Shown one piece after another: positions 255 to 49,093 of a stretch of DNA of 64,000 nt (positions are counted from its first letter, which is position 1; the number at the start of each line of letters is the position of its first letter). The stretch lies in assembly GCA_011109175.1 (NCBI GenBank), contig RDEW01000029.1:654158-718157 (forward strand). The letters are read 5' to 3'. The position numbers and the translations under genes were made by a program. Origin of the DNA: Dicyema japonicum. Taxonomy: Eukaryota > Animalia > Dicyemida. Under the pieces are notes generated by a model, which saw only the letters and a program-made list of their open reading frames with translations, was not told the DNA's origin and ran no database searches.

Positions 255-620
255 TAACTATGGGGAAGAGCGGCTGCTGACATCACGGAGTAAGCGTTTC
301 CGCGGACAACTGGGATACTAATTCGTTGCCTTAGTCAGACCGCTTCCCGCACGTCTTTCTTGCGGTGGGCCAATTTTCCCCCAATTTCCTTTAGGAAAGA
401 CTTCCGGCTGCACCAGACGTCTCGATTGCTACCGGTACAAAACGGTAGCGGTCTCAAATCTCGCCATAATTTTTTAATCTTGATTTTCTCGGCCAGATCG
501 GCTGCCGATCCAGCAGACTGCGCCGAGCTGAGAATCATCGAGTTCGAGAAAGTATCCACAACAGTGCAGTCCCATACGAGCGATTTTCCCTCAGTGAACG
601 GAAAGATAGTTAACCCATCA
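255..620 (-). mobile_element. 3' fragment of CRE-like (RLE) non-LTR retrotransposon
   Basis: Minus frames read AEKIKIKKY..DRYRFVPVAIETSG..FLKEIG..LRQRISIPVVRGNAYSVM, the C-terminus typical of CRE-clade RLE proteins; homologous to 58274-58560. Confidence 0.75.
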
Positions 621-777
621 TTTGATTAAAGTATCAACTATTTGAAAATAAATATATTATTTAATCAAAAGAAATTAAATCCGTATTTATTTTTGGAACA
701 TCATCTATTTTGAAAAATAATATTTGATCACTAAATTTACATCTTTCGATTTCAACCTCAAGTAAAACATTCCAAAC

Positions 778-1008
778 CTAAAATAATAAATTTTGATACA
801 AAATAAGATTAATCAAGTCGACAATATTATTTTCATTAACAATGCGATTATTTACTTTCAAAATGAAATCTCCACATTTTAATCCTAACAAAAAGGCGGG
901 AGAATTATTAATTACAGTATTAATAATATAAGGGGGATTCGAAGTTATTGTCAATCCATAACCCACTAATTTGTCCTTCTCAATAATAAATTTTAAATCT
1001 ATAATCAT
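778..1008 (-). CDS. PDZ-domain coding exon of an unidentified host gene
   Basis: GYGLTITSNPPYIINTVINNSPAFLLGLKCGDFILKVNN matches the PDZ GLGF/SPA..GL..GD.IL.VN pattern. Confidence 0.7.
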   Translation of the reverse strand: MIIDLKFIIEKDKLVGYGLTITSNPPYIINTVINNSPAFLLGLKCGDFILKVNNRIVNENNIVDLINLILYQNLLF

Positions 1009-1304
1009 TTAGATAATAAACTATTCATGTATTTTAATAACTACACTAAAATTTATTAAATTTATTTTTTTTCCATAAATTTTATTACAAAAATATGACA
1101 TTTTATATTATAATTATCGAAACGTGGCAAAAGGCGATGAAATTTTAACAGAGGATGATTATTTTAAGAGATGTGAACAACTTGATAAAATTCTATACTA
1201 AAATTTCACACAAGGAGCACATGAAGTCTGATACACCACCATCACGCAGGAAACTAAAGAGACTATCAGAACCACTCTTCTTTTCAGAGAGAGAGGTGAG
1301 GGAT

Positions 1305-3050
1305 AAAATTATTATTATAAGCACGTGCCAAGATCATGAAAAAGCATGTGCAACACGAAAAGGTAACAATCTAATTAACATCGCCCCATCTTTTTCGATC
1401 TGTTGCCATGTTCCGTAACATATCTAGATCCCCCTGAGATCTTCATCTAGTTTTCCAATCCCCCTTGAGATCTTCATCTAGGATTACCGGCAGTGTTGTC
1501 CTCGACCGGCCGCGGAAACGCGAAGCCTCTAAGATAAAATACTTTTTCCATTGCTATGTTGGCAGGGGTCCCCATATCGTGGAGGAGTATGTGTCCAAAC
1601 AGCCTTTATCTTGAATTAGCAATAATCATCACGTGATATTGGCTCAGTTCCTGTTCTCTTGTATAAGATTTCGGACGGCATTTTTGAAAAAGCTTTGGGA
1701 AGAAAGGAGTTCTCGGAGATGATTTATGTAAAAAGAATTCAACTTTTCGAGTTCTTTCTCTGTACATGGCCATGTATCGGCATTATATAATAGGATTGGT
1801 TTCACTAAGGCATTGTATAGTCTCATTCAAGTTTTAGAGTCAAGCCCTTTGTGCAGAAGCCAGGTCTTCTTCATTTTGTTGAAAGCGACGTTAGCTAGTG
1901 TCTTCTTTCGTGTTACATCTTTGGTGTCACCGTGAAGGGATCCTAGTTTTTGATCTACGCCAGTGCTCCTTGGTCACTTCTTTTTAGCTCCGTGATTTCG
2001 GTTTTGTTTGTGTTCACTTTTAATGACCATTCAGCTATTTTATCAAGTATTTTCTCTAAAAGTGCAATTAACTTTTCTTTGTTATTCGAAATAAAGTCTA
2101 CGTCATCCGCATATACTATTATGCTCGTTCCTTCTCCGATATGATGCTTCAAGTCTCGTAGAGCTGCCTCCAGTAAAATAATAAACAAAATCAGGGATAA
2201 TGGACTCCTTGAGGGGTACCAATTGTCGTTTTCAAATGTCCTGATAAAGCTTTCCCAGTCCTGACCATCAAACTTGTCCGTCAGGAGTGTCCTGACCATC
2301 CTAATTTTTGAGCCCTTCAAGAAGTGCTCCGGTATTTGCAGCAGCTTGTTCCTGTTGACGGAATCGAAAGGCCTTTGACATATCAATTCCCAGAATGTTT
2401 GTCGTTATTTTAAATATTTGAACAGTCGCACTTTTCCATTTATGGCTCCATATAACATTTGACGTTGATCTCCATTTGCGAAAGTCACTTTGATAAGCCG
2501 ACAGGTCTAGGCGTCCCTCCATTCTTTGAAGCGTAATATTGGCTAGTATCTTCCGCAATGTGATGGTTAAGACTACTGGTCTTAGGTTCTCAACTTTCCC
2601 CGCTTTTTTGTTTGGCTTCTATACTGGTAGCAAATTCTTCTCCAAGTGACAAGGTGGCTCCTTTACTGTACGTTTCGTTTAGAATCAAGGCAATTATCTA
2701 TTATAGTTTTTGCGTTCCATATTTGAAAAATTCACTATTTAAGCCATTTGGGCCGGGACTCTTATTGTCTTCAGCTTGACACTTGCTGTCATCACTTCTT
2801 CCAAAATTATTTCTTCGTCTAATTTTCCCTGATCCGTGTTAATTGTGAGTTTTTTGCTATTTTGTTAATACGAATTGTGTTTCAAAATAGTCCGCTATAA
2901 TTTCTGCAACTTCTTGTTGGTTAGCAATATGTTTTCCTTCTTCTCGTAAAGTCAGTGTTTTCCTTGGCAGTTTTCTGACTTGGCGACAGCTTCATAAAAC
3001 TTCGCATTGTCTTGAGGCTTTCGATTTTTTCTATTTTTGTTATTGTTTAG
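1305..3050 (-). mobile_element. Decayed RTE-clade LINE (RT and C-terminus), 5' truncated
   Basis: FDSVNRNKL, YADDVDF, RLYNALVKPILLYNADTW, RGRPRTTLP; 3' end GTGCT(TAA)n at about 1305-1325; several frameshifts. Confidence 0.85.
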
Positions 3051-3061
3051 TTTTTTTAATA

Positions 3062-3470
3062 TCGTATTGAAAAGTATATCGGGGACATGGAAAATTGGTA
3101 CTCACCAGTCTTGATGAACGTGTACAAACAGTAAATCGACCCATGTTTTTCATATGCATGCGCCTCGTGGGGACTGTCCACATCTTGGACAAATATGAGG
3201 AAATTTGAGAAATGTAAAAGAGGGCTTACAGAGTAACAGAGCGTTGGATTTGTGAAGATCACCGAACCGGACCTACGCTTCTAGAGGCCCTTATGAGACT
3301 AGACTCCAGATCACGAGAAGATGATTCTGAAAATTCAGGAACCGTCCTGTACGTTCATGCGCGAGCACGAAGGAAGAACACCGGGCAAAGATGAGGTCTC
3401 TGTTAGTTGCATCGGGATCACGTGATAATTAGTTTGGTTTTACTGTGGTCTTGGGTTAAATAAATAATAA
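3062..3470 (+). mobile_element. ~410-bp 3' fragment of a Jockey/I-like LINE with terminal hairpin and (AAAT)n tail
   Basis: Encodes SPVLMNVYKQ..PCFSYACASW; ends GGGATCACGTGA..GTGGTCTTGGGTTAAATAAATAA; close homolog at 28700-29102. Confidence 0.8.
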
Positions 3471-3899
3471 ATTCTTAAAAAACAAAAAAATTGACCTTAA
3501 AAAGTCAATTAAATTTTCTCTAAATTTTTAGTTTAATTTTTTTATTAATAAAAAAATACAGAAAAAAGAAATCAGTGAGCCTTTGCGTATGATTGCGTAT
3601 ACGTTTCCACGTAATACGGCAATCCCGACTCTTTGTCTTAGCCTAAATTTATTAAAACACAAAATTAGATAATTTTTTATATTTTCGAGTAGGAAAATAT
3701 CTTTCGTAAAAATTTAGTGAAGAATCAAAAATAACCTCTCCAGTTCACATGACGTTTCTTGGCATTCCATTAACAAATAATGATCGAACGGAGAAATTAC
3801 TATTTCAGTTTATTCCATAAATTTCGTTTGTTTTCATTCGTTTGTCAATGTTTTCTCTATTTACAGGAATCTTCTTTGGAATCAGCAATCTTTAACAAA

Positions 3900-6782
3900 A
3901 AAAATGCCGCGTGGTTCACCTGTATGGTGGTGTTGTGCATCACATGATGTTGAAAAAAAGTACACTTTCCCTATCCCTATCTATGAAGGAGGATGGTTTT
4001 CCAGGTACGCTCTAATTTTGTGTGGTGACGTCGAATCCAACCCAGGCCCTGAAATCATCCTGATCCAGATCAATATCAACGGAATACGAAACAAGGTGCT
4101 GGAAGTCCGCCACTTACTCAATAGTAATGAAGTTGACATTGCTCTAGTCCAAGAGACAAAACTACAACCAAACATACAAACCCCAACCTTTCCCGGATAC
4201 TCCATTATCCGTAAAGACAGAATGATTAAGCTTGGTGGAGGACTAATGACACTAATAAGAAATGGAATTCAATGTGAAGATGTTTCAAACAAAAATCAGA
4301 AAACTCTATCCAGAAGATGACCCCTAGGAACTAATTGGCATAAATGTTAGAATTCCTAGGAAAACTATAAATATTGTCAATGTATATATTCCCCCTACTA
4401 CATCCTGTCCAAGTGGATACTACCCTAACCTACAGATTTTCTCAAACCTCAAAAACGTAATTCTATGCGGTGACATCAATGCCAAACATCAATTATGGTA
4501 TGAAGGCCAGAAACCAGACAGTAGAGGAAACCTACTGGCCAGAAACTTGGGACAATTTTGTATATTGAATAACACCATAAACTATACAAGAACACATACT
4601 CGAACAGGAGACAAACCTACATCCCCTGACCTCTCCTTATGTTCCCCATCAATGTTTCCCCTCGTCAACTGGACTGTAAAATATGAACTACGAAGTGATT
4701 ACAACCCTATTATGATGAAAATCAACACTGAAAATATATTTATCAGACAGAATTCCACTTTTTTAAATTTTGAAACCGCGGATTGGTCCAACTTCTCTAA
4801 TTACATCGACACCAATATGGAAGTATTTTGCACATTGGTATTTTCATCAATTGACCAAATGATCAAAAGATTCACGGACATTATACTTCAAGAAGAAAAC
4901 TATTTATTCCAATGCCATCAAACAAAGAATACCTATTATAATAGCACACAAAAACACTTATCAGAGAAAGAAATAAATTAAAAAGCAAAAGGAATTATCA
5001 AATGATGATTTCCAAAAAATGAAATCCTTGAATATACAAATTAAACAAGTTACCCAGTCTAGAATCAAGAAGCGATGGACATCATTATTGATTCTCTATC
5101 GCCAAATACATCCGAGACGCTGATATGGAGGAAAATTAAATTTTTGAGAGGTTGCAATGAAGGCTCTGAGAAAGTCCTCCACGGACAGGGATTAGCAACA
5201 TCGACCCAAATATTTTAATGAAGCACTATGTCGTAATCAGCCATAAAAATTTCTCGATGGAACACAAAGTCTACAAGAAGAAGTTGTATCCATCATATGA
5301 TTTGATTGTCTTTACTCCACAAGAAGTTCGAAACGCAATCATGGATGCCAAAAACTCCCGTTCCCGAGGTGCTGACAATGTCTCGATGATGGAACTGAAA
5401 CACCTTGGTGAAAAAGCAACCAAATTCCTATCATACGTTTATACTATATCTGTGAACAATAATATGATACCTTCTATATGGAAGAAATCCATAATTCTGC
5501 CAATTCGGAAGCCAAACAAACCTGTAAACGATCCCTCTTCTTATCGTCCAATTGCAATATTATGTGCAATGTCCCGAATTTTAGAAAAATTAATCTTAAC
5601 ACGAATCAAAAATATTGTACCAAATCGAGTATTCCAGCATGGATTCCGCGAAAATCATTCTACTAACTCATTTAACAAAATTAACTCAATATATTTCTGA
5701 TGGATTCTCTTATCCAAAACCACATAAAGGGACCATAATGGCTTCAATAGACTTGAAGAAAGCATTCGACTCCGTGTCCAGGACGCTGCTTATAGAGAAA
5801 ATTTCTGACACTCTTATAAATCCAAACATTAAAAGATGGCTGTCGAACTTTTTAAATGAAAGAAGAAGACAAGTGATGTCAGACAACAGAAAATCTAAAT
5901 CCCGTTTATTGGCGAATGGTTTCCCTCAAGGTTCACCTCTCTCTCCCCTTCTCTTCAACCTGTACACCAATGACCTTCCCACCAATGACGATCCCGATAC
6001 ATTGATACTCTCATACGCAGATGACATTGTTCTTGCGACGAGAGACTCTAACTATGAGAAGGAAGGGATGAAACTTCAAAGTTATATTAGTATGCTTGGA
6101 ACATTGGCTCACATCAAATCGACTGGAAGTTTCTACAGGAAAGTCGTTTATAACAATTTTCTCTACATATAGAAGATCATTATACTCTCCTAAAATCAAA
6201 TTGTTTGGATATGAAATTCCTATGAATAAGTCTCCAACAATACTAGGATTAAAGTTGGATACTCTCCTGACATTCGGCCAACACGTCAATGACGTTATTA
6301 CCAAGGTCAGGGGGACGAACATATTGAAAATTTTGTCCCGATCACCAATCGGGCGCAACACCTTCTTACTACAGAAAATTTACAGACAATACATACTGCC
6401 AGTAATCGAATATGCATGTCCCTCCTGGAGTTCGATGATTTCTGAATCGTCGTCTCAAAAATTAGAAGCCGCACAACTTGCTGCCTTGAAAATAATAAAT
6501 AAGAAAACTGTGGATAACGTATTGAATGTTAAAGAACATCTAAGGTGGAGAGTGAAGTCATTTCTACAGTGGGCAATAAAAACCGGCTGTCCGCTTTTAC
6601 TCGCTATATCTGACTATCTAGAAAATGCGGGAAATCTAAGGAGAATGAGACCATCCCCGTTTCTACCAATTCTGTTGGATCTTCGAGGACCCCGAACAAG
6701 AGCCAGAACCCGGAAAACCGGGATCACTTAGTTAGTAGTTAACTTTTAACTTTTTCTAATCCGGTGATCTTGGGGTAAAAAA
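3900..6782 (+). mobile_element. Near full-length Vingi/Ingi-like LINE (2A-APE-RT, no ORF1, no RNase H), frameshifted
   Basis: 13-bp TSD AATCTTTAACAAA at 3887-3899 and 6783-6795; ILCGDVESNPGP 2A; APE motifs QININGI, LVQETKL, LCGDINAKH; RT motifs DLKKAFDSV, PQGSPLSP, YADD; ORF ends TGIT*; about 2.9 kb. Confidence 0.88.
4021..4050 (+). other. 2A-like ribosome-skipping peptide (CGDVESNPGP)
   Basis: Exact DxExNPGP consensus directly upstream of the APE domain. Confidence 0.85.
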
Positions 6783-7049
6783 AATCTTTAACAAAGGATA
6801 TAGTTAGTTAAAGAACATCCGCGTTACCAGTACCACTGTTTATGGTTTCGCTTTTAACATGTTATGCTTTAGAAATTTTAAAATTTTACTATTCAATTTC
6901 CTTCAAACTATTTGTTAATAAATATTCACGGCTTATGTTTTTTAAATTCTTATGAAGTAATGGATTCATAGTAGATTCTTTTGCTTTTTGAATTAATATA
7001 ATTCCCCATTCATCACAAATATTGATAATCTGTGTTAAATTTTTACAAA

Positions 7050-8330
7050 TGCTTCAAAGAACAAGAATGCAGTCTAATGGATTACAATTTGGAATCAGTC
7101 ATATGAATATAAACATATATGTTCAACAAAAAGAAAACTCTTAGTCCATCTTGATTTGTCTTGCAACAACCATAACTAGTATTCTTCGAATTAGATCGCT
7201 AATTACGAATGATATAGGGATTTTTGTTTAAGAACAAAGAGAATATGTAGAACAAGCTCAAGATTCTTGAGTATAGACCTCCAACACTAATCCATATTCC
7301 GTCCATGCCTACAAATTCACACAATACATCACAAACGACTTTTGGATTACGAATTCGGAGGCAGTCCCGTACCAGCTACTGCTTCAGCCTTCCATAAAAC
7401 GTCCACGGAATTGTATCCAGTCATTATATTACTCTTAGCTTTCTTTAATTTCGTCTCATTACCACCAAGATGTCGATCTTGGATGCCCTCACAAGTAGCG
7501 CTAGTTCATTATGCATTTTCCCTAGGGATCGGGCATTCGCTAAGACTATTTTTAGCCCTTGCTTTAAACATGACTTTGCTTTTTCAAAGCCAAGGTCCTC
7601 CACCCTTGATCCAACTAAAATTTTTGCAAGAGGGAGTCTCCTATTTCCCTTGTAAAAACGGCATATGGTCGTGGTAGAGGGGGCTAATTCCTTGACAAAT
7701 TCATGAAGCTCGTTATCAACAACCCAAAAGGGCAGGTTCTTCAGCACAATTTCTGAGGGTCTCACTCAAATTTCAATGAAGCAATGGTTTCCAAGACCAA
7801 AAGGTTAAGTTAGCGTTCACATGTTCACAAAAGTTCCTTTCATCCTCCTCATTTCTGAACTCGAGGCAAAAGATCCTTTGTGGTTAATGTGATAGATCCC
7901 GTCAAGTCGAACAAGTGCAGAACGTTATAAATTTTGATGGCTCCCATACTCGATGCAACAGAGATCTGTATAAAAACATTGCCAGAGTATTCAGAAGCTG
8001 GAGGATCGTGAGGAATATACTTTTTTCAGTTTTTGTAGATGTGCAAACTGTTTTTATCTCCTCTTCAAACTTTTTCACAGTAGTAGTTCCTGCAGCTTGT
8101 GGAGAAGTACTACTACCTTTCGATCCTTTTGAACTAACTATTGGAACCATTTTTTCCAATAATCGAATTATTGTCTGATTCGTGTAGCTTTGTGATCTTT
8201 ACGTCGGATCCAAATCATTTTTCTTATCATGGTGGGGACAAATTCGGCGTATTCCTAGTATCGCCAACTCTATCTGTACATGTGAGCAGCCCCAAAACTC
8301 TATGGGATATCTGGAGCGACCATATTCCAC
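7050..8330 (-). mobile_element. 5' part of a Jockey-like LINE (gag-like ORF1 plus APE start), decayed
   Basis: SEIVLKNLPF..RLPLAKILV (gag-like) followed by VLANARSL..IDILVV (APE N-terminus). Confidence 0.6.
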
Positions 8331-8359
8331 AAGACTTGGTTATCAGCATGAGACCTGAT

Positions 8360-8651
8360 ATTATTTATTTATTAACTCCGGATACACAGAGAAAGAGGTT
8401 AAAGTAAACAACTACTTATGTGTATTCCACTTCTACAGAAACAGAGTCCATCCGGAATCAACATAATGGGTAAAAGACGTCCATACTTGCAGTTATGGAA
8501 ACCCTTCCAGTGGAGTGGGGGAGAGCAAATGGTCCTTTCTTACCTGCCTGGCACTTGGCGCCACCACTCTAATTAGAAGAGAGGAGGAACAGACAAACAA
8601 AACAGAAATTTCAACCAATTAGCCACAAAGCACCACATATCGTCACGCGGC
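8360..8651 (-). mobile_element. Non-autonomous Vingi-derived short element, copy 1
   Basis: 5' GCCGCGTGAC..ATGTGGTG; 3' end ..GTGTATCCGGAGTT plus (AAAT)n, with the 5' stem arm mutated (GAATACAC); homologous to 27732, 32785 and 59618. Confidence 0.85.
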
Positions 8652-8738
8652 TAAATTTTAGTTTGTACTATTAAATATCTGGATTTTCTATATCGCAAAA
8701 ATTAAAAAATCAGTTATTTCACCTAAAATGTTATCTTA

Positions 8739-9189: not shown

Positions 9190-9325
9190 CATATGAGAAG
9201 AGCTGTTCAGGATTCTCGACCCGCCGGACTCGTCCTCACCTTTGTCGGTCTGGGATCACTTAGTTAGATGAGAACTTTTATTTCTTTCTCTTTGACTCAG
9301 TGATCCTGGGGGTAATAATAATAAT
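9190..9325 (+). mobile_element. Short LINE 3' end with hairpin and (TAA)n tail
   Basis: GGGATCACTTAG..CAGTGATCCTGGGGGTAATAATA; inverted homolog at 44550-44690. Confidence 0.75.
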
Positions 9326-18624: not shown

Positions 18625-18900
18625 TTAATTTATTAACCCCGAAATCACAAGAAAAAGGATAAAAATTATCGTTTAAGTGATCCCGGTGTCCACACCAGTC
18701 TTTTTCTGTGGTTAGTTTTTGAGTCCTGGATTAATCTCCACAACAAGGATGGTTTTTTCTCACATCTCGGACAGGCTTCCATATATGATTTGATGTCCGG
18801 TCCGAGGGGACGTTCGAATATTAAAAATAATTCAATTAGAATAAATAGTTTGACTATATTTTTGTCTCGAACATCGTCTGTTTTGGGCATGTAGATTCTC
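18625..18900 (-). mobile_element. LINE 3' fragment with terminal hairpin
   Basis: NHRKRL..TGIT*; GGGATCACTTAA..GTGATTTCGGGGTT plus AT-rich tail. Confidence 0.65.
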
Positions 18901-21163: not shown

Positions 21164-21687
21164 TATTTTATTTATTTATTTTAATAACCCGGGAACACCG
21201 AGAAAGAAAGACAAAAGAGTCAGACAGTTAGGTGATCCCAGTCCTCGCAATCACTTGTGCCATTCGACGTCTGTGATCCTCCATCGTCCCCACTACTTTC
21301 CGGAAGAGCCTTCTCTCGGTTTTGCAGAGGAATCCGATCGGGGAGGGGAATTTCTTATCCAATCGGTTTTCTCTTGCCATGGAAGGATTAGGCGAAGCGG
21401 ATTTCCATCTTCCTCACAGAGGCGAAGAAATCCGGAGCCACGACTACGGATCTTAGCTTCCATGAGTAGTGGGTCGACTGTTGATCCATTACGTGGGGAA
21501 AGCATACTGATTGTTTTCCGGTATATCGAGTTGATTCTTTGGACCAAAGACTCCGATAGCCCGAATCTCCATGCAACGGAGGCATACTCAATGGCAGGCG
21601 CGATTGTTTGTTGGTAGAGTGTAGAAACGGAAAAGTCCATGTTCCTCGTGGTCCTCCGAACAAGGGCGCGTATAACGTTAACTTTCT
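21164..21687 (-). mobile_element. 5'-truncated Vingi-like LINE copy with TSD
   Basis: 12-bp TSD GGCTTGTTGTTT at 21152-21163 and 21688-21699; LYQQTIAPAIEYASVAW; ends RTGIT*, hairpin and (AAAT)n; same family as 52158. Confidence 0.85.
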
Positions 21688-25432: not shown

Positions 25433-25840
25433 ATTTTATATTAAAATTAAAAATGGCATTTATGGGAACTAAAATCAATTATGGCATTTGAAACCCAAAA
25501 TAGCAAAAGGACATCTATAACTTCTTAGATAAAACAATTAAAAAATATAATTTAACTTGGTAATTAAAAACGACCCTTCCCTGAAAAATGGTATTTTATG
25601 GTAAAAAATATCCCTTGTGATAACAAGCTATAATTTTATATTAAAATTAAAAATGGCATTATTTTAAAATTAAAAATGGCAATTATGGCATTTAAAACCC
25701 AAAATAGCAAAATGACATCTATAACTTCTTAGGTAAAACAATTAAAAAATATAATTTAACTCGGTAATTAAAAACGACCCTTCCCTAAAAAATGGTATTT
25801 TATAGTAAAAAATATCCCTTGTGATAACAAAGCTATAAAC
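25433..25840. repeat. Two-copy ~205-bp tandem duplication
   Basis: ..GGCATTT(G/A)AAACCCAAAATAGCAAAA..AAAATATCCCTTGTGATAACAA present twice. Confidence 0.85.
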
Positions 25841-27610: not shown

Positions 27611-27731
27611 GAGATAGTTCATATTTAAAAAAATAATTACAATAATTAAAATTTAAAAATTCAGCGCTAGTTTATTAGTCAATAAATCACTTAATAAAGT
27701 AATGGAGGTGGACTAGTCAATAAATCACTTT

Positions 27732-28019
27732 TTATTTAATTTATTTATTAACCCCAGATACACCGAGAAAGAAGTTAAAGTAAACAACTAATTAAGTGTA
27801 TCCAGTTTCCACTTCTACAGAAACAGAGTCCATCCGGAATCAGCATAAAAGGTAAAAGACTTCCATAGTTGCAGTTGTGGAATCCATTCCGGTGGAGTGG
27901 GAGAGAGCAAATGATCCTTTTTCGTGCCGGCCCTCTAATGTGAAGAAAGAAAAGGAACAGACGAACAAAAATGAAACTTCAACCAATTAACCACGAAGCA
28001 CCACAAGGCACCACGCGGC
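27732..28019 (-). mobile_element. Non-autonomous Vingi-derived short element, copy 2
   Basis: 5' GCCGCGTGGTGCCTTGTGGTG; 3' GGATACAC..GTGTATCTGGGGTT; internal deletion in the pseudoknot region. Confidence 0.85.
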
Positions 28020-28033
28020 TATTAATAAAGTAA

Positions 28034-28699: not shown

Positions 28700-29102
28700 T
28701 TTATTTAACCCAAGACCACGGTAAAACAAAACTAATTATCACGTGATCCCGATGCATTCTAACAGGAACCTCATCTTTGCCCGGTGTTCTTCCTTCGTGC
28801 CCGCGCATGAACGTACAGGGCGGCTGCCTGAATTTTCAAGGCCAACTTCCCGTGATCTGGAGTCTAGTTTCATAAGGGATTCCAGAGGCGTAGGTTCGGG
28901 TCGATGATTTTCACAAATCCAACGCTCCGTTATTCTGTAAGCTCTCTTGCATTTTCTCAATTTTCCTCAAATTTGTCCAAGATATGGACGTCCCCACGAG
29001 GCGCATGCATATGATAAACATGGCTCGATGTATTGTTTGTATACGTTCATCAAGACTGGCTGAGTACCACTCTTCCATATTCCCGATAAACTTTTCAATA
29101 CG
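28700..29102 (-). mobile_element. ~400-bp LINE 3' fragment (same family as 3062)
   Basis: ORF ends EHRAKMRFLLECIGIT*; terminal hairpin and tail. Confidence 0.82.
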
Positions 29103-29178
29103 TTCAGTTTCTTATCGCATTTCAATAGAATGTTTTCTACGTGAAATGTTAAACAGAGATAGGCTCCTCAGTATTATT

Positions 29179-30311
29179 ATTATAAGCAACATTCGTAAAT
29201 CATAATACTTATAATTTCACTCGTGCAGCATCAAAACAATCCTCCGAACCAACTTCTTCCAACCTCCTCGATCGTAGGAGAGTTTCCTCAACTCGTCCAG
29301 GTCGTCCCCACTTCTTAGACGTTTGTTCACGAGCTTTAGATTTCCGTCAAGTGTTTCAGGTAGTGTTATACGCCGGCGTTTACGAAATCACGGTCCCTTT
29401 CTCAAAAAGTAGTCCTCCATTGCTATGTTTGCTGGAGTGCCCATTGCATTGCTATGTTTGCTGGAGTAATAAACTAGCGCTGAATTTTTAAGTATATACG
29501 CAAGATATGTCCAAATAGCCTCCAGCGCATATCAGCAATTTCGAGACTTAGTGGACCCGTGCAACATCTCTTGTACAGCAATTTTTTTTATTCTTGCTGG
29601 CCAGCTCAGTTCTAGTAGGGATCTAAGTTGTCTTCGATGGAAAGAGTCTAGTCCAAGTTGTTCGGTTTTGGACGTTCCCCAGGTCGATGAATTGTACATT
29701 AGGATCGGCTTGACAAAGGCTTCATACAGTCTCAAACGAAGTGATGTGCAGGATCGTCGTTTGCCAATCCACTCTTTATTCAACTTGTTCATTGTTACCC
29801 AAGCGAGGGCTTTCCTTCTGGCAATATCTTGACACTCTCCAAGTAAAGAGCCAAGTTTGTTTGTTTTTCGTTATGTTTCACTTGATCTGCTTTCCATTCC
29901 ACAATGTCAGTTTTTTCGATATTTATTCCAAGGAACCATCAGTTCAGCTCAGCAAAAACCAGCTCGAGGAGTCGAAGTAGGGCCGATTTGTCTTCTGACA
30001 CAAAGTCGACGTCGTCCGCATAGGCAATTTCGACGATGTTGCCATCATTGAACTTCCGAAGATCTCGTAATGCCGCCTCCAGATATATGACAAATAGCAG
30101 GGGGAGTACCAAAATTGCACGTAAATTCACGGGATAACGTCTTACCGATCCGCACTCTGAGCTTCGTGTTAGATAGCAACATTCTGATCATATTGACAGA
30201 ATCTGGGTCCAAGAATTGTTTCAGTATCTTGAGAAGTAGACCGTGTCAAAGGCCCTAGAGAGGTCTATTCTCAGGACTGTTGTTGCACTTTCAAATCTCT
30301 GGTTGATAGCG
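29179..30311 (-). mobile_element. 5'-truncated RTE LINE with TSD
   Basis: TSD CAGTATTATT at 29169-29178 and 30312-30321; YADDVDF; LYEAFVKPILMYNSSTW; 3' end GTTGCT(TAA)n. Confidence 0.85.
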
Positions 30312-32784: not shown

Positions 32785-33106
32785 GTGGCGCCATGTGGTA
32801 CTGCGTGGTTAATTGGTTGAAGTTTTCTGCTTGCTTGTCTGTTCCTCCTCTCTCTTCCTAATAGATTGGTGTCATGTTTCACCTGTCTAGGTGACGCCCA
32901 GTGCCAGGCCGGCATGAAAAAGGATCATTTGCTCTTCCTCACTCCACTGGAGAGGTTTCCACAACTGCATGTAAGGGACGTCTTACCCTTTATGCTGATT
33001 CCTGATGGACTCTGTTTCTGTAGAAGTGGAAACTGGATACACTTAATTAGTTGTTTACTTTAACTTCTTTCTCGGTGTATCCGGAATTAATAAATAAATA
33101 ATAAAA
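32785..33106 (+). mobile_element. Non-autonomous Vingi-derived short element, copy 3
   Basis: GTGGCGCCATGTGG 5' end; structured region 32868-32927; GGATACAC/GTGTATCC hairpin; (AAAT)n tail. Confidence 0.85.
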
Positions 33107-33169
33107 TGTCACAGTCACATCTAATAATCCGCGAATAAATTAAATTGTGGTTAAATTAAAATTAAATTA

Positions 33170-36100
33170 ATTCCATAGACCACTGTTAAACCGAAAAAAA
33201 CTAAACTAAGTGATCCCGACATAATTGGATCAAGGCTATCATCTTTGCTCGGTGTTGATCCCTTGAGCTTACACAAGTTCGTTGCAGACGAGCACTTTCT
33301 TTTTAGCATTGGTGTCAATTTTTGTTTTTTTCGATTAGTTTCTCCATGGGCGTCGGTGATTTAATGTCTTCCCTGTGTACCATCTCTTTTTAGTTTGAAG
33401 CGTTTTTTCTGGGTTGCGGAAATTTTCTGGATGTTCGCATAAGAGGCCAGTAGTCTCCATGAAGTACACGCATATGAAATGCATGGTTCGATGTACTGTG
33501 AATAGAGCGTTTAAGTATAGGGTGATGTCCAATTTTCCATAGACCTGTTAGGCATTTCAGAAGGTTGATTTTCTTCTCACATTTGTTCACCAGTTAGTGA
33601 CATGTCTCGAAAAGTTCATGTGCGTATCGAAAGTCAGACCTAATAATTTTGCTATTTGCTGAACGGCAATTCTCTCCCTCTGCAGTAACTTCTATTGTCC
33701 TGTTCGACAATCTTTTCTCCGAGGTATAGAGTTGTAACAGATTTTTCGGTATTGATTGACATCCGATTTTCATTAAACCACTCGAGCAGTCGATCCATGT
33801 GGTGTTGTATTATTTCCGTCGCTGTTTGGGTGTTCTGATCCCGTGAGGCTAAGACGATATCATCTGCATAAGCCAGAAGCGGGTCGTCTTTTCCATTCGG
33901 CGTCGGAATGTCATCCGTAAATAGGTTAAATAGTAATGGTGATAGCGGCGAGCCCTGGGGTACTCCATTTGGGAATAAACGGGAGACAGAATGAATGTTT
34001 CCAATGCACACTCTACCTCTTCGTCCGGTAAGGAAGTTCATCAGCCAGCGTTTGAGGTTTTTAGGGATATCTGATAGGTAGATTTTCCATGTTAGGTTCT
34101 TCCTTGGCACAGAGTCGAAAGCTTTGTGGACGTCCAGTGAGCATAACACAGTTTTCTGGTGTCTTGGCTTGCACAGAAATCCAGAGCGAATAAAGTTAGT
34201 CAGGGATGTGAAGAAGCTCGTTGTGGACCGATCCTTTTTGAAACCATGCTGGAACGGTTTATCGGGAGTTCTTTCAGTGAAGGAAGCTGGGTCTTCTTTC
34301 GGTTTTCCTGGCTTCAATTCAGGGCGAATGTTTGCAAGTTTCCATATCGTTGGGATTGAGTTACAATTAATCGACCAGTTGTAGATTTTGGTCAGGGTAC
34401 CGATTCCATCATTGCCTAGGTTCTTCAGGAGGATTATAGGAATTCCGTTTGGACCATGAGAGAATGCGTTTCTTTTGTTTGGCTTATGAATGTTATTACC
34501 TTCTTTCCCGTGAAATAAGTTAATTGATCCCTTTTCGGTTTTCTTAGCGGCGGTTTGGGTGGGTCAGTTCTCATGTGGTTTTTGTGAGAGATTTTCGCGT
34601 AGTATTTTATTATGGTGTTTAGGTCCTTTTGGCTGAATTCGTCATTTCCGGGTGTCCTCTTATCCACCTTCGAGATATTTCGAATAGTCTTCCAGACTTC
34701 GGATGTTGACCATTTACGATTTAATAACGTAAGGACAATCTTCCATTTTACTCTGGGTTCCTCACTCTTCGGTATACCTTCCAGAAAGAGGGATTGTGTT
34801 TGTTTAGCTTCCGTAGTTGAGAGTTCCACTTATTCTCATTCCATCTTTTAAATTGTTCTGACAACTGCTTTTGTAGTTCGCCGATTTTGTGACACAAGGC
34901 TAAGCGGTCCTGTGGATATCCTCAATTTAGTCCTTAGATTATTTCTTTTCAACACAATCTTCATGATGTGCCATGGAATAGAAACAACATTATCGTTTCT
35001 TGAGTGTATTTTTCTAGCAAAGTTATCCAGATAGTATAAAATCAGATCCGTTGCTCGTTTACTTATTTTATCAATTTCCAGACGAGTCTTGGGCTCGGTG
35101 TGCCCTAACATTCAATTCCTTTGCAATGAAAATCCTATAGTGATTCCAGTTTAGATTCTTGGTATCGTAATCGACAAACACTCCAGGTTCATTAATCATT
35201 TTCATATCCACAGATATTAGCAATAAAATGTGGTCACTGCCAATATTCGAAAGAGTAATTCGTACTTAGGCGTATTCTGAAATAGTAAGGGAAATCAAGA
35301 AGACAGCAAACTTGTCACCTCCGTAATGAGAAATATGGTTATCCTCTTTGATGTAAGGACTTTTACTCCTAGGCCTTTAGATAGCTTCATCAGGAGCTTG
35401 GTATCCCTATTACTCTTTTTGCATCTGAAGGATGTGCTCTTGGAGTTGAGATCGCCTCCCAGTATGGCCATCGGATTTTTATTGAAGAACTGGGAGATAT
35501 CTCCGGTACATTTTCTCAAGGATTTAAAATACATTCCGCCAATTGCGAGCCAATCATCGACACAGCGAACACCAATAGCGACAAACTCACAACAAATTGA
35601 TGAAACAATTCTCGGATTTCTTGTCTTTAGATGACACCAATAAAAATTGATGTCGCAGTCCCTGTTATAGCCCCTTCTTTCTAGTATAAAGATATCGATA
35701 CGAAAACCGGGAGTACCGTATTCTCATCTGACTTCATCTTCGTTACGTTGTCAATATTATATCAGCTTCCTCGGCATTCGCCAGGGAAGCTATCTCGTGA
35801 TGTCTCCTCAGGATTGATCGGGCATTCACAAACATGATCCTTATGTTTTGGATCACTGGTCTTGGAGGTCTGATCTCTTCAGGACCAGAGCCACCATGTG
35901 CTGTAAATCAAAATTTACCTTATCACACATTTAGTTCAGACGGTTAATCACATATGTAAGTTCTCTCGATTTTCTTTCAGATGCCCCCGGAATAGGTTCC
36001 CAGCAGGACCTTTTTAGCTTCTCTTCCAGGTATTTTTTATCCACAATTGGCTTTTTCTATGTTGGATTCATAATATCGTATTTTAAAGGTCGATTTTTGA

Positions 36101-36700
36101 TAATAATCAAAAATTGCGTAACGTGGCAGAAAAGGAATTTCTCCTTTCCTCCATGTTTCTAACCCAGGACTTTCGGTTCCTCTTCCTGTGATGGCCACGG
36201 CTTCCCTGGCCACCGGACAACCACCATTGCTCGTTCCTTGATCACCAGACCTGCAGTTGATACAGGATTCTCTATTTTCGGTTCTGGGCACTCAGAAGAA
36301 CTACACGCATATGAAATACATGGTAAATGTGGTCCTCCACAGAAGAAACATCTCTTTGTCCCATTGCAATGTCTTGTAATGTGTCCGAAATATTGACAAT
36401 TAAAGCATCTTGGGAGGTGTCTTTTGGCCCAGTCACAGTCGATTTCCATCCATCCAATTCGTCCAACTCATCATAGGTAACCAATATTCTGCCGGTATGG
36501 GGTGGATATAAGTTGATAATAGTCTACAATTTATTCCCTGTCGGTTTTAGTTTGATTTGAATAATCGCAATACGATCATTAACACTCCACACTTTGAACT
36601 CTCGCTTTGTCAACGAAGGAAATCCATAGTGTCAGCATTTACACGGTAGTAACATTAGGTGGCATTTTCCATAAACTTTATCGTGTCCTCAACTCTGTAG
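33170..36700 (-). mobile_element. Jockey/I-like LINE with gag ORF1, APE and RT, decayed (5' limit uncertain)
   Basis: PRCFNCQYFGHITRHC..RCFFCGGPH; MFVNARSI; ILGGDLNSK; LDVHKAFDSV, PQGSPLSP, YADD; ends VGIT* with hairpin. Confidence 0.85.
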
Positions 36701-38959: not shown

Positions 38960-41900
38960 GGCCTCCACCTGAGGATCAACGTGTATCCGGAGAAGGAAGA
39001 TGTTGGCGTTGAGAATAAAATTTTGGATTTCTGGATAAGGTCAGCTCGACTTTTGGAGAGGAGAGTCCGAAGTTCCAGAATCTTCTTTCTAATTATCTGA
39101 TGTATTTTTGATTTTTTTGATTTTTTGACGTCCCTCTTAAAAAGTATGTCTGAAAAACACGAAATTTGTAATATAAAAGACTTCTCTCTTTTAACGTTCA
39201 ATGTCAGAGGACTCTCTAGTGCCTGGAAAAGAAAAGAACCATGTGAAGACCTTTCAAAATATAAGATATCAATCGGATGTCTCCAAAAGACCAAAATATC
39301 GAAGGAGTTTGAAGAACAAACGGAAAGTTTTAGTTAATCTATCTCTCTGGGGGATCAAAACATTACGGACTTGGATTCGCTGTAAGAAAGGACCTACTCT
39401 GGCGCATATACCTTTACTGGACAATCAATGAAAGGATTTGGATTTTACAAATAACATTGGACGATCATAAAGTTATCTTACTATTATTAACGAATTTGCT
39501 CCACCTAGTGGATATTATTATTATAAGCAACTACATAGAATCATATAAACTATAATTCTATTCGTGCCGCGTCTGAACAATCCTCTTAATTAGCCTTTCC
39601 CCTCCCCTCCTGTCCGATGCCAAGTGCCGCAGACTACTAAGGTCTTCACCGTCCTTTAGTAGTCTGGTTACTGATCTCAGGTCACCATTAAGGACTTCCG
39701 GAAGAGTTATTCTTGGACGACCTCTGAACTTCTCCCCTGACGTATCGAAGTATTCTTCCATGACGACGTTTGCTGGCGTGTCTTGTTCCAATCTGAGAAT
39801 ATGGCCAAACAATCTCCAGCGAGCCTTCATGATCATGGTGCTCAGAGGTCCGGAACCGCATCTTCTATATAAATTTTCACTCCCTACACGCATTGGCCAC
39901 TTTAGTCCCAAGAGAGACCGAAGTTGCCTTCTGTGAAAGGAGTCAAGGTTTTGTTCGTCCGTTTTCGAAATTCCCCACGTCCCAGAGTTGTATGTTAGTA
40001 TGGGCCTCACGAACGCCTCATACAACCTGAGTCGGAGTGATGGCCCGACCGAGCATTTTCTTATCCAACATTTCATAAGTTTTTGCATAGTAACCGTAGA
40101 TAACAATTTTCTTCTTGCAATGTCTTCGGAGTCTCCGAGAAGAGAGCCAAGCTTTACGGTCTTCCTCCAACATTCACTATTGCGTAGTTCCATCCGCTTA
40201 ATTTCAACAATATCCGTTTTCTGAACATTCAGTGATAGACACCATTTGGCCAAACAGCCTGATGCAACCTCCAAGAGACGTAAGAGTGCTTCTTTGTCAG
40301 TCGAGATAAAGTCAACATCATCGGCATACACGATCTCCATAATATCATTGTTGTAATACTTCCGGAGGTCTTGCAGAGCCGATTCAAGGTATATAGCAAA
40401 CAATACTGGGGAAAGGGAATCTCCTTGGGGTGTGCCCACTGTTGAAATAATTTCCCGTGACAAACATTTTCCAATACGCACTCGTAACCTCGTGTTTGAT
40501 AAGAGTATCCGTATCAGAATAACCGAGTCCTTATCCAGGAAACTTTCAAGCACTTCAATGAGTTTTCCCCGACGGACAGTGTCGAAAGCTCTGGTCAGAT
40601 CAATTCCAAGGATAGTCTTTGAGCTCCGGAATCTTTGTTGAATAGCACATTGCCATCTATGGCACCATACTACATCAGCCGTTGATCTCCCTGTCCTAAA
40701 ACCACTCTGGCTCTGGGCCAAGTACCCGTCCACCGGCTCTTGGATCCGATTAAGAGTAATTAGGGCAAGGATCTTCCTTAAGGTGTTTAGAAGGATGACA
40801 GGGCGCAGGTTTTCAACTGGCCCAGGGGGTTTATTACCTTTTTGAACTGGTACTAGTATCCCCTTTCCAATTTCTGAAAAGTCCTTGTTTTCTATCATGT
40901 CATTCAGCAATTTTGAGAGTTTATCTGCAAGTTCTGGAGGGCCAAATTTTAGCAATTCAGATGGTATATTATCTGGTCCTGGAGAGCGCCCAGATTTAAG
41001 TTTCCTTATCGCCATGCAAACCTCCTCCGGTGAAATGATCCGTTCAAGTGTTGTGTTCTTAGGCGTGAAATCTGATTTTTCTCCTTTTACAAAGAACAGT
41101 TGTTCAATATGCGATGCTATGAACTCTGTCTGTTCTGCAACATTTCCTATTGTTTTTCCATTTCTGTCATGCAAAATAAGTTTCACTGATTGGCTCTTCC
41201 TCCGTATTAGTCGTATAGCCATGAATGTCGCAGCATTGTCTTTAAGGTTTTCTACCTCTCTGATCTTACTTTCCAACTGACTAGTGTGATGTAGTCTGTT
41301 TAGGAGTTTGATTTTTCTCTCAATTTGCCTTCGTTCTTGTTTCAGTTTGCAAACAGTCTGAGGATCGATAGTATTTTCGGATCTATGCCTTAAGTTCTTC
41401 TGCAAATTCAATAGGGCTGACACTTCCGGGTGACGCTGACTGCTAGTGGATATGGATCAATAAAAAACATGCAAAAGTTGGAAATCGAATCACTATAGAA
41501 GAATCATTCATTGGAAGACATGGAAGGGGAAAAAGGAACATTGCAGGAACTTGTTAGCTAGCTTTTGTCAAGCAAATAACCTATTCCTTTGTAACACATC
41601 TTTTATGCACTTCAGCAAGACACAGGACAACTTGGTCAGGCAATAGAACTAAGTCTGACGGAAGCATTGCGAAAATCTACAATCAAATAGACTACATTAT
41701 TTGCAGACAAAAAGACCGCATATTGTCACTGATGCCCGTGCTTGATGTCACTGATGCCCGGAGGGTCTATAATTGACAGCGATCACAAGATGGTAATTGC
41801 CAAAATGTCCTTAAAGAAACTTATGGGTTTACAAGGGATAAAAAGAAAGTGCAATGGACACACAGAACTGCGGGAGAAGGGATTCGATGTAGACCATCTA

Positions 41901-44549: not shown

Positions 44550-44690
44550 TTATTATTATTACCCCAGGATCACTTGGTCAAAGAGAAAGAAATAAAAGTT
44601 CTCAGCTAAGTGATCCCAGAGTGACAAGGAAGAGGACAAGTCCAGCGGGGTCTAGAGTCCTGTGCTCCTTCTCTCATCGAGTGTGGAATC
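44550..44690 (-). mobile_element. Short LINE 3' end (homolog of 9190-9325)
   Basis: GGGATCACTTAG..AAGTGATCCTGGGGT(AAT)n. Confidence 0.75.
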
Positions 44691-45759: not shown

Positions 45760-47140
45760 AATTAATATATTTAATTAAATTTTTGCATAATGGTTGAGGC
45801 TGGTGACGCATCTCAAATTGCACTAATGTCTTTTCACTCTTTTCAAACTTTCTGTTCACGTCGTCGATCAAAAGGAGGTCACTCTGCCAGGATCTGAAAC
45901 GATACAACATTACTATCTGCTGCCTGCAAGAGACCAAAGTCAAAGAAGGACTTAACGAACAAATTGCTGACCACGACCTTATCTTGCTTCCTTCTATATT
46001 ACAAACCATAGAACCGATCAATCTCAATTTACCTGCTGGAAGTTTATGGAATAAATTCGTAAACAAAATAAAAATCAGTGGCTAATCACACGATTTGGAC
46101 AATTCCCAAAACCTTCAAAAGAATACACGACCACATATAGATCACCTCTCCCATTTACAAAAGGATCTACGTATCAAATGCATGAACACCCCCAACAAAG
46201 TGAAAGCAGCTGAGTTCAAAATCCGAAGAAACAAAATTATGCGAGAAATCATAAAAAAATGTCAGATAAACCACGAAACAGAGCTACAAAACCTTGCAAA
46301 TGAAGTGGGAATGTACAAACACGAAGCGCAAATGTATGCATCTGTAGTAAAGATGCTATCGCGAAAGAAATCCGAAAATCTAACAATTCATGACGAACTC
46401 GGAAGAACTATTTACAACAACCAGGAACGCACATACATCATAGCTGATCACTTCGAAAAATATTTCAATTTTAAAAAAGAGGAAACGCTTTATCCATTTG
46501 ATGGAGTCCCGAGAAAGCTATCACCAGAAATAACTTTATTGGAAGTTAAAAAGGCTGTGACCAGACTAAACAACTCAAAAGCACCAGACCCAGATAATGT
46601 TAATGCAGATCTCATAAAATACTATCCTGAAGAGTTTCAAAAACTCATCACTCGCATTGTTTCGAAAAACACTCCAGAATTAACATCGAAATCAAAAAAT
46701 TAATCTTCTTACATAAAACGGGGAAGAAAATAGGAAAGCTAAACAGCTTAAGACAAATCATACTACTCAACTCACTACGCAAAATTCTATCTCTAATCGC
46801 TCCGGACAGAGTAAAAACCCCACTACGTGGATTTATCGGAGCTAACCAAAGTGGGTTTGTCTCTGGAAGATCAACTTTCGATGCCGTTTGGATCCACAAA
46901 TGGATGTGTGCTTAATGCCAAAAATATAAATAGGAGTGCCACATATTGGGAATCGACCTATCTAAAGCATTTAACTCAATCAGCAGAGTCAAGATGATAC
47001 AAATATTAACACCACTACTCGAGGAAGATTCCATCAGAATAATTCGTTATCTAACCTCCTCCACTCAACTATTTATCCAGCTCGGAAATCAGAAATTCGG
47101 AATAAACAAGGGCGTTGTTTTTCAAGGTACTCATTAATAA
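45760..47140 (+). mobile_element. Decayed RTE fragment cut by a Helitron
   Basis: LNNSKAPDPD, GIDLSKAFNSI; ends at GVVFQG just before the Helitron 3' end. Confidence 0.75.
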
Positions 47141-49093
47141 CTAGGTAGGCAGCTCGCTTCGCTCACTGTGAGCTAGGTACTGCGGACGGCTGTCGTTCAC
47201 ACCTTCGGAGTTCACTCCTATTTCGTTCCTGTGGAGATCAGTTTTTTCTTTAGTGAATTATATTTAACGAATTAAACTATTTTTATTAAAAAAAACTGAT
47301 TGTTATAATAAAAATTATCAAATATCTTATTGAAATGCTTGTTGATATACTACATTGCTTGTACGACCGTCCTTTTTGTATATGAATATGTTTTCTCGTT
47401 CACCTACTCTAGAACAACCTACATATAACTGTTTATGTGCAAAACATTCACTTGCTAAAGATAAACCTACTACTTTAAGAGTTTGTCCCTGTGATTTGAT
47501 AACTGTCATTGCGAAACTCAATTTCAATGGAAATTGTAGTCTCTTAAATCTAAATGGTAATTCATCCGAAATTATTGGAATTCTTGGAATATAAACGTCT
47601 TCTCCTTTATTTCGCACCGTTAATATCGTTGCTTCAATAATATTAGACATCAAATTTTTTACTACCAATTTTGTACCATTACATAACCTTGGATATTTCA
47701 GATTTCGTAATAGAACAACTGGCGATCCTAGTTTTAATTTTAAAAAATGATGAGGCATCCGTGACTGTTCTAAAGAATTTAGAAATTCTACAAGATATGC
47801 ACATGCTAATTTTTGATCCATAATTACATCGAAAGATTTATAAATACGTTCCAACCCGGGTAATTTAATAAGTAAGTTTAAGTTAATATTTTGTACTTCA
47901 TCAGTTAGTGGTAATAGTATAGCTCTTTCCCGAAGCCAGTCGAAACACGTGTAGTTTTCCTGTAGATCTGGATACAAAAAAGTCAATAAATTTTCTGAAC
48001 TGTGTACATTTATACATAATTCTTCAGAAAGTTGTACCTTTAAATCTTTTGAATTTATTTCGAGTGCTCCATTCCCTACATTTAAAAGTACCTTAGCGAA
48101 GGTATTCGTTTCTGACTTGTTTTGTGCACGAATATTTACATCTAAACTTATTTTTTTACAAAAGTCCAGAAATATGATGATTTCAGACATGCATTTTATT
48201 CATCTGCTGGTGTTACCCTATGAATAATAAACAGTGTCTGTTAAAATCACCTGCTAATACTAATACCGACTTACGAAATGGAATATCAAAGTGTTTTATG
48301 TCGCGAAAAGTTTTATCAACTGCTTCAAATGCTCTTTTACTTACCATTGTACACTCATCCCATACTATTAGATTACAATCACGTATAATTATCCCAGTAA
48401 GTGAATTTTCTTTAATGTTGCAAACTGGATTTTACATATCTCTTGCTAGATTAAATGTAGTTTGAAAATTGAATGCGCTGTTCGACCACCATCTAAAAGC
48501 GTAGTCGCAATACCTGTAGATGCAACTGCTATTGTTTTTTTATGATTGCATCTCGCATTTGCTAACAATAGATTTAACAAATATGTCTTACTTGTACCTT
48601 CTGGTGCATCTAAAAAAATATCTTACCATCATTTTCTTCAATATTTCTGTTTATTTCAGTATAGATTTTTGATTGACGTTCCAATAATTTCGGTTCCCTG
48701 TTTTTTATTATTTGATGTAGTTCTTCTAAGTTATATTTTTTCACATTCTAAATTACAATATGCCAACATCAATGTAAATAAAAATCTAATATGTGATGGC
48801 ATATTGAAAATCCCAGCTTCGGTCAATGCGATTTTTATGTTAATCTCTTTTTTAACTCTTTTTAGAATTTTAATTTTTTTAAGGGACCGATCTCTTGAAG
48901 AGGTTGAATCATCTTATTTTTATGTGAATCTCTTTTTTAACTCTTTTTAGAATTTTAATTTTTTTAAGGGACCGATCTCTTGAAGAGGTTGAATCATCTT
49001 ATTTTGCTATTATCTCAGGCATTTCCTTCTTTAGCTAAGTGCGCACGGACAGACAGACTGACAGACAACTTATTCTTTTATTAATAATAATGA
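47141..49093 (-). mobile_element. Helitron, internally deleted (PIF1-like helicase retained, no Rep seen)
   Basis: 287-aa helicase C-terminus (LLRNL..LCNGT, QFPLKLSFAMTVIKSQGQTL, LYVGCSRV) and upstream motif fragments; 3' hairpin GCTCACAGTGAGC then CTAG|T; 5' TC..(TGTC)n start (5' limit less sure). Confidence 0.85.
48842..49005. repeat. Two-copy ~85-bp tandem repeat inside the Helitron
   Basis: AATCTCTTTTTTAACTC..GGGACCGATCTCTTGAAGAGGTTGAATCATCTTATTTT present twice. Confidence 0.85.

Follow-up and report, generated by a model that had tools for sequence, protein, structure and literature searches.

The reverse transcriptases (RTs) of stringent-type long interspersed nuclear elements (LINEs) select their template through a hairpin at its 3′ end, an arrangement understood in detail for only a handful of elements, for the most part L2 LINEs of fish. 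Amniote CR1 LINEs possess a clade-wide conserved hairpin in the 3′ untranslated region (UTR), followed by an octamer microsatellite and thought to be the site of RT recognition and priming; this hairpin has not been reported to overlap a stop codon. Here we describe a hairpin at the 3′ ends of LINEs in Dicyema japonicum, a spiralian parasite of octopuses, in which the final codons and stop of the element lie within the stem. The starting point was a 64,000-nt stretch of contig RDEW01000029.1, hereafter the window. By analogy with the fish elements, this hairpin probably serves as a conserved 3′-terminal recognition element in a single, diversified lineage of APE-RT LINEs, compact elements of ~3 kb.

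In the L2-clade LINEs UnaL2 of eel and ZfL2-1 and ZfL2-2 of zebrafish, the stem-loop and the terminal repeats are both required for retrotransposition, a short interspersed nuclear element (SINE) partner is mobilised through the common tail, and the ORF2 protein (ORF2p) recognises the stem in a general and the loop in a specific manner (PMC1636434, PMC4176376). The D. japonicum assembly comprises 67.5 Mb in 377 scaffolds with 36.7% GC and 49% repeats, and its repeats are named only as ‘LINE-1 ORF2’ copies (PMC6736024). Our genome-wide searches covered 67,542,437 bases in 377 sequences.

A hairpin at the 3′ ends of Dicyema LINEs

An initial annotation of the window, made from the letters of the DNA, had proposed about 11 hairpins with GATCAC as 5′ arm and GTG(A/G/T)TC as 3′ arm, and all 11 of these sites exist. 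The pattern GATCAC-N20-45-GTGDTC yields 13 matches that correspond to nine sites, palindromic arms being counted twice; dinucleotide shuffles yield a mean of 0.39 matches, and none of 100 shuffles reaches 13. The two other sites, 18635 and 62191, possess slightly mutated arms (GTGATT and GAATCAC, respectively) and were confirmed by eye and by alignment. The 11 aligned sites share the layout YYGGGATCAC, a loop of 20-45 nt, GTGRTCYYGG and a tail of (TAA)n, (TAAA)n or A-rich sequence, with ATCAC and GTG invariant and with the preceding GGG and the following YYGGG nearly so. At positions 6720-6776 of the plus strand, for example, GGG ATC ACT TAG is followed by a 34-nt pyrimidine-rich loop, GGTGATCTTGGGG and an A-run.

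The motif and covariance-model searches suggested in the annotation were then carried out across the genome. The strict pattern GGGATCAC-N20-45-GTGRTCYYGGG matches 729 times, and its reversed control does not match at all. A covariance model, R1, built from 35 diverse hairpin copies, gives 14 strong matches in the window: ten are LINE sites in good condition, and the other four are copies of a short non-coding element. Two weaker matches fall at 57565-57624 (18.2 bits, E 0.02) and at a decayed copy, 62200-62231 (10.4 bits). The sites beyond those annotated initially are thus one divergent LINE copy and the four short-element copies. Genome-wide, 150 of ~50,000 rough candidates were scored with R1 and all 150 are strong; the hairpin is therefore present in thousands of copies, a figure to be read as an order of magnitude. 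Rfam covariance models, applied to the whole window at gathering score, give no match. Every copy, even one cut to 150-480 bp by 5′ truncation, has its hairpin 10-30 nt short of the 3′ end, and the repeat tail begins no more than about 5 nt past the stem in all 16 window sites and in 48 distinct genome copies.

Pairing was counted in 48 distinct hairpins, drawn from the window and from other genome loci and anchored on CAC and GTG. The stem consists of 11 pairs. GATCAC/GTGATC, originally taken as the stem, holds as its core but falls short of its extent, because the trailing ‘YYGGG’ forms an outer stem with the YYGG that precedes GATCAC. The outer pairs exchange G-U for G-C, or U-G for C-G, and the innermost pair, formed by the third base of ACN and the base preceding GTG, is C-G in 13 hairpins, U-A in 11, U-G in 10, G-C in 9, G-U in 2 and U-U in 3, in keeping with the G-U tolerance that had been proposed. 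Never broken are the three CAC/GTG pairs, the A-U pair and the adjoining G-C (or G-U) pair. Single-sequence folds recover stems of 10-12 pairs, with z-scores of −2 to −4 for most copies and of about 0 to −1 for two. In a 35-row alignment (A3), 93% of cells are paired, compared with 34-49% when the partner columns are slid by 1-3 positions. Two-sided changes occur at four pairs and in 21 cells of this alignment; shuffles give 3.2, and 0 of 500 reach 21. RNAalifold independently predicts nine of the 11 stem pairs. Relative to the standard stem, the divergent copy at 57565-57624 carries G-C to A-U and C-G to U-G replacements (GGA ATT ACC paired with GGTGATTTT).

Intact copies end their reading frame with GGG ATC ACN and a stop, and the proposed overlap of the hairpin with the codons of G-I-T-stop, with all three stops in use, is borne out by frame checks and by the 48 hairpins (TAA in 20, TAG in 13, TGA in 10, none in 5). 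In 45 of the 48, the stop codon has its U opposite a pyrimidine; this U is therefore kept unpaired and opens an internal loop. The synonymous third bases of the Gly (GGG) and Ile (ATC) codons are invariant in 48 of 48 hairpins, in families that, in the coding DNA beside the hairpin, are no more alike than shuffled sequence. Loops nearly always begin UAR-(N0-3)-UUAG or CUAG (6729-6740, 9261-9272 and 3425-3436, for example), which places stops in two frames; as the non-coding short element keeps it too, this start probably acts as an RNA motif and not as a reserve stop. At 57565-57624(+), the stop is replaced by AGA and the frame continues to a TGA within the 3′ arm.

Conservation of the hairpin was contrasted with that of its surroundings by pairwise identities among 18 family representatives, each compared with a shuffled partner. 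Clustering of families by upstream DNA was confounded by neighbouring insertions, and the representatives were picked by hand instead. Mean identity is 0.84 in the 5′ arm (shuffled partner 0.45) and 0.76 in the 3′ arm (0.52), compared with 0.56 in the loop (0.50), 0.62 in the tail (0.53), 0.52 in the 90 nt directly upstream (0.49) and 0.48 in nucleotides 95-185 upstream (0.48). The arms are an island of conservation amid flanks at shuffle level. These values agree with the annotation in that the carriers have diverged, their nucleotide sequences outside the arms being no more alike than random, and they do not show the uniform similarity through the 3′ UTR that would mark a single recent family.

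The carrier lineage, its non-coding partner and neighbouring elements

The carriers include an intact copy elsewhere in the genome (L051, reverse strand), whose single 1030-codon frame encodes a 2A peptide (GDVEQNPGP), APE and RT and ends in AGIT, with a TGA stop within the hairpin and a (TAA)n tail. Two LINEs of the window, A and D2, share this 2A-APE-RT build, and the reported presence of the hairpin in 2A elements without ORF1 is thereby upheld (2A at 4027-4050(+), at 54282-54305(−) and in L051). LINE A (family F5) occupies ~3990-6790 of the plus strand, with 2A at 4027-4050, APE at 4328-4978 and RT at 5209-6169; its hairpin and the start of its A-rich tail lie at 6714-6779 (minimum free energy −21.1 kcal/mol, z −3.3; 60 bits), and a frame check places GGG ATC ACT TAG at 6720-6731. 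LINE D2 (family F2b), on the minus strand, has its body at ~52157-54400, its hairpin at 52178-52240 and a TAA stop (52188). LINE E (family F8), also on the minus strand, has its hairpin at 33168-33223 with a TAG stop (33178), its RT at 33655-34563 and its APE at 35298-35723, and is preceded by an open reading frame (ORF) at 36162-36467 with CX2CX4HX4C knuckles. No 2A motif was seen in E. Judged by this CCHC gag-like ORF, E is a probable gag-bearing element, and to that extent the hairpin occurs in gag-bearing elements as claimed; the ORF has no match in Pfam, so that zf-CCHC is not confirmed, and a genome search for it gives 140 matches, none of which adjoins the listed E-type RT matches, so that the linkage in F8 rests on the one window copy.

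The remaining LINE hairpins of the window belong to copies of several families. Two 5′-truncated F0 copies end in TGA, one with its hairpin at 3408-3460(+) (copy ~3063-3475, stop at 3416, (TAAA)n tail) and the other at 28704-28756(−) (copy 28700-29174, stop at 28714), the latter directly after the (TAA)n tail of a LINE of a second lineage, the G-type described below; a decayed F0 hairpin, that of initial site 62191, lies at 62200-62231(−). F3 copies carry hairpins at 9246-9315(+) (TAG at 9254; z −3.9) and 44558-44623(−) (TAG at 44568; z −4.2), each with a (TAA)n tail. Family F21 is represented at 18633-18690(−) (TAA at 18635, 3′ arm GTGATT), and F2b again at 21183-21245(−) (TAA at 21193, one U-U mismatch in the stem). 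A 5′-truncated F2c copy (~54600-54945, hairpin 54610-54673, minus strand) ends in V-I-T, has lost its stop and likewise directly follows a G-type tail. The divergent hairpin at 57565-57624(+), whose G-I-T is written GGA ATT ACC, has also lost its stop and precedes a (TAA)n tail.

The RT tree envisaged in the annotation, to ask whether carriers are one clade or several, was built from 90 segments: 10 carrier rows (7 families), 2 rows whose 3′ end is undefined, 10 G-type rows and 68 outside homologues. For the tree only, copies with frameshifts were mapped to the L051 frame, which is intact, and breaks were filled with X. The carriers all group in one RT clade (Shimodaira-Hasegawa-like approximate likelihood ratio test, SH-aLRT, 99), apart from the G-type LINEs and from the 68 outside homologues. 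The sister of this clade consists of three metagenomic proteins, P0001-P0003, the closest of the outside proteins (~31% identity), and RNase-H-bearing proteins of the Ingi/I kind come next. The ‘divergent LINE families’ of the annotation are thus diverged indeed, with RT identities of ~28-51% between carrier families, but they are not several unrelated clades. With a single clade of carriers, and with another kind of tail on the window's other LINE lineage, the sharing reflects descent: the hairpin was inherited within one old, Dicyema-specific radiation and is not shared across clades. The contigs of P0001-P0003 were traced, and none contains the hairpin; in two, a short UTR precedes a tail, (ATG)n in one and (CAA)n in the other. 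In the closest outside relative (positions 449-4070 of the metagenome contig of P0002), the ORF opens with a 2A (MAALIVRSGDVEQNPGP) and is followed by a ~50-nt UTR and an (ATG)n tail.

The short non-coding element measures ~320 bp and ends in CUGGAUACAC and GUGUAUCCGG, on either side of the loop. The compensated GATACAC/GTGTATC stem ascribed to short elements was indeed found, at 27757, 33036, 59886 and 8372. The four copies lie at 32785-33102(+) (hairpin 33029-33090; 58 bits), 59635-59952(+) (hairpin 59879-59940), ~27730-28021(−) (hairpin 27748-27809; 65 bits) and ~8359-8653(−) (hairpin 8372-8433, its outer stem partly mutated). Three adjacent pairs are exchanged with full compensation, leaving the length of the stem unchanged. 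Genome-wide, the matched compensated arms occur 556 times, compared with 1 and 0 matches for the two hybrid arm combinations. The compensated stem stems from one founder event rather than many, yet it provides a working hairpin with another stem sequence and no reading frame. Despite this differing stem, the loop of the short element is nearest to that of LINE family F2 (80%), and the element is presumably mobilised in trans by F2. Family-specific loops and the F2-like loop of the short element fit the published model of general stem and specific loop recognition (PMC4176376) and partner specificity based on the loop, and would argue against free mobilisation across families, a possibility raised in the annotation.

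The second LINE lineage, G-type, forms a separate RT clade (support 100) and is exemplified by a 632-codon ORF at 39561-41456(−), which carries an RWRLFGH motif that we take to be CR1/L2/RTE-like. G-type 3′ ends possess their own, differing small hairpin, then TGCTTA(TAA)n, and no GATCAC; their very short 3′ UTRs lie at 39510-39565, 29170-29225, 1300-1392 and 54950-55030 on the minus strand. The small G-type hairpin at 39561 overlaps a TAG stop. Two loci appeared to join a G-type RT to a GATCAC hairpin (55430-54620 in the window and 5867-7225 of genome locus L037), and in both a complete G-type tail, with hairpin and GCYTWA(TAA)n, stands between the two. Both are 5′-truncated carrier copies inserted directly past G-type tails, and sharing across clades is rejected. 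At ~29175 and ~54950, at ~7058 of L037 and at ~1245-1336 on the reverse strand of L051, a 5′-truncated GATCAC-LINE copy starts where the (TAA)n or (TAAA)n tail of another, equally oriented LINE stops, which suggests that the microsatellites of such tails, matching the tail of the RNA, are preferred as insertion targets. The window further contains an ORF with the Pif1 helicase 2B domain (Helitron-like) at 47330-48199(−), adjoining a truncated G-type LINE copy at 46131-47086(+), and self-comparison reveals a ~200-bp tandem duplication of 92% identity at 25433-25838.

Probable RT recognition and alternative roles of the hairpin

The position of the hairpin, its helix and covariation, the conservation island of its arms, the single carrier clade and retention in a non-coding partner are direct observations, and by analogy the most likely role of the hairpin is that of the ‘stringent LINE’ hairpins of UnaL2 and ZfL2, namely recognition by ORF2p/RT. 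In such a mechanism, the element's own ORF2p would bind its RNA at the 11-bp stem and at the loop, which is specific to the family, and reverse transcription would start, at a nicked target, on the short repeat tail just 3′ of the hairpin, be it A-rich, (TAA)n or (TAAA)n. The target would probably often be a similar microsatellite. The reading frame runs into the 5′ arm, probably because the elements are so compact: GGG AUC ACN doubles as stem bases, the third base of Thr supplies one half of the innermost pair, and the stop codon begins at the conserved U-pyrimidine mismatch that opens the internal loop. F2 LINEs would presumably move the short element, with its F2-like loop, in trans.

Several points weigh against this assignment. 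Binding by ORF2p, priming on the tail and a role in mobility are carried over from UnaL2 and ZfL2 by analogy. Most stem positions are invariant, and the covariation rests on four pairs, three of which come from the one founder event of the short element. For some copies the fold is not more stable than that of shuffled sequence (54620, z −0.07; 33178, z −1.2). The tree derives from a quick search and from query-anchored projections of frameshifted copies, with RTs from 7 carrier families. Finally, the conserved sequence could also serve 3′-end formation, as (TAAA)n tails contain AAUAAA. The hairpin with its tail might be a terminator or polyadenylation signal instead of a handle for the RT, and the hairpin and the U/A-rich stretch after it do stand at the end of the transcript. 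AAUAAA is absent, however, from (TAA)n and A-run tails, and a pure processing signal has no need of family-specific loops. Moreover, the hairpin is faithfully copied into every 5′-truncated insertion with repeats of variable length, the mark of template slippage, and genomic copies stop inside the repeats, not past them. We therefore regard 3′-end formation as a very unlikely substitute for RT recognition.

The location of the stop codon raises the alternative of a role in translation, whereby a stop within the stem would pause or release the ribosome so that fresh ORF2p captures the RNA that encodes it (cis-preference), or would adjust how often translation terminates or reads through. A functional overlap of this kind would have the ribosome melt the hairpin for the last three codons and stop at the unpaired U, and the RT-binding site would re-form only as ORF2p is released. 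Termination would then be coupled to capture of the element's own RNA, amounting to a built-in cis-preference, and G-I-T would be dictated by the RNA and not the reverse. The stop does lie directly past the innermost pair in 43 of the 48 hairpins, with three different stop codons in use, its U is nearly always unpaired, and the last three codons are themselves stem bases. Nonetheless, we consider such a role unlikely, both in its general form and as this specific cycle. The tie to translation termination proposed in the annotation finds no support in the ~320-bp non-coding element, which in at least 556 copies and without any frame keeps the stem, the U-C (U-pyrimidine) mismatch and the UAA-like loop start UUAAUUAG. 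The stop-less copies at 54620 and 57565 also retain the hairpin, though these may simply be dead. Compaction of a 3-kb element explains the overlap equally well and, because the non-coding partner keeps the same internal loop, is the best reading of it.

The same codons could be conserved for the sake of the protein, if ORF2p needed its C-terminal G-I-T and the 3′ arm paired by chance. The final residues are GIT in 42 of the 48 hairpins, and the peptide that precedes them is common to many families (FLCRxKRRHFRxxVGSxxEHxxRIR, with the homologous core VGS/T-x-x-EH-x-x-R-I/M-R upstream of GIT); the non-coding element, furthermore, changed three stem pairs freely, a hint that part of the invariance among LINEs is coding. 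Yet EIT (four hairpins) and VIT (two) occur as well, families F5 and F3 keep the hairpin without the upstream peptide motif, the synonymous third bases of Gly and Ile do not vary, the third base of Thr changes in step with the base it pairs with, and the non-coding 3′ arm is nonetheless 76% conserved. Protein constraint is accordingly a highly improbable account of the hairpin. The idea that the hairpin has no function, its similarity merely reflecting common descent of recent copies, draws on the near-identity of many copies within families, and is next to negligible in view of the shuffle-level flanks and 76-84% arms of the 18 representatives, the ~28-51% RT identity between families and the compensatory changes in the stem. 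Recognition by the element's RT thus remains the reading that we favor.

Comparison with described LINEs

Amniote CR1 and Dicyema carriers are alike in combining a clade-wide hairpin with a microsatellite, and differ in clade, sequence and repeat unit. As for an L2/CR1 grouping of the carriers themselves, our tree, which holds no labelled L2 references, places them next to the RNase-H-bearing Ingi/I-like proteins and apart from the G-type LINEs. In architecture, the carriers resemble Ingi/L1Tc and Vingi, with a single ORF encoding an N-terminal 2A (GDVExNPGP), APE and RT and a size of ~3 kb that matches Vingi-2_Gav (3128 bp) (PMC3708506, PMC5786205). Like the bipartite derivatives of Ingi and Vingi (RIME, NARTc and Vingi derivatives), they are accompanied by a short non-coding derivative that keeps the ends, and, as with Ingi and I, their nearest outside homologues beyond the sister group bear RNase H. 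Unlike Ingi, the carriers lack RNase H (no PF00075 match by Pfam in L051) and the C-terminal Cys-His motif (not found in L051, the copy checked); the missing RNase H fits a Vingi-like element. Family F8 deviates in that it seems to have a CCHC ORF1 in place of 2A. The sister metagenomic elements, in contrast with the carriers, have a short UTR with an (ATG)n or (CAA)n tail and no such hairpin. We thus describe the carriers as Ingi/Vingi-like by architecture.

The closest parallel to the hairpin itself is that of UnaL2 and ZfL2. In both systems the hairpin stands at the very 3′ end, and right after it comes a short tandem-repeat tail whose variable length suggests template slippage; the stem is conserved and paired across related families while loops vary; and a non-autonomous short element carries the same tail. 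The mismatch within the Dicyema stem recalls the stem hinge of UnaL2 (PMC1636434). Unlike UnaL2 and ZfL2, however, the Dicyema elements belong to a different RT lineage, their stem is unrelated in sequence, and their tails are (TAA)n, (TAAA)n or A-runs in place of (UGUAA)n. Furthermore, UnaL2 and ZfL2 possess a separate 3′ UTR, whereas in Dicyema the frame enters the hairpin, such that the 5′ arm is made of the last three codons and the stop opens the internal loop.

The kind of device is thus known, and its presence in another LINE lineage, of 2A type and Ingi/Vingi-like by architecture, is new. Also new are the embedding of the last three codons and stop in the stem, an unusually compact form, and the clean natural series of families with a compensated partner. 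If the assignment is correct, Dicyema provides a second, independent example of the stringent type, in a spiralian parasite whose genome is about half repeats. Thousands of copies in at least 15-20 families, sharing one invariant stem with family-specific loops, together with a high-copy non-coding partner with a compensated stem, amount to a natural mutagenesis set that should be useful for separating the requirements for stem, loop and tail, and the stop and last codons within the stem present an unusually clear case of overlapping protein and RNA constraint. Model R1 offers a simple marker with which the 3′ ends of these LINEs, and the LINEs themselves, can be annotated in Dicyema.

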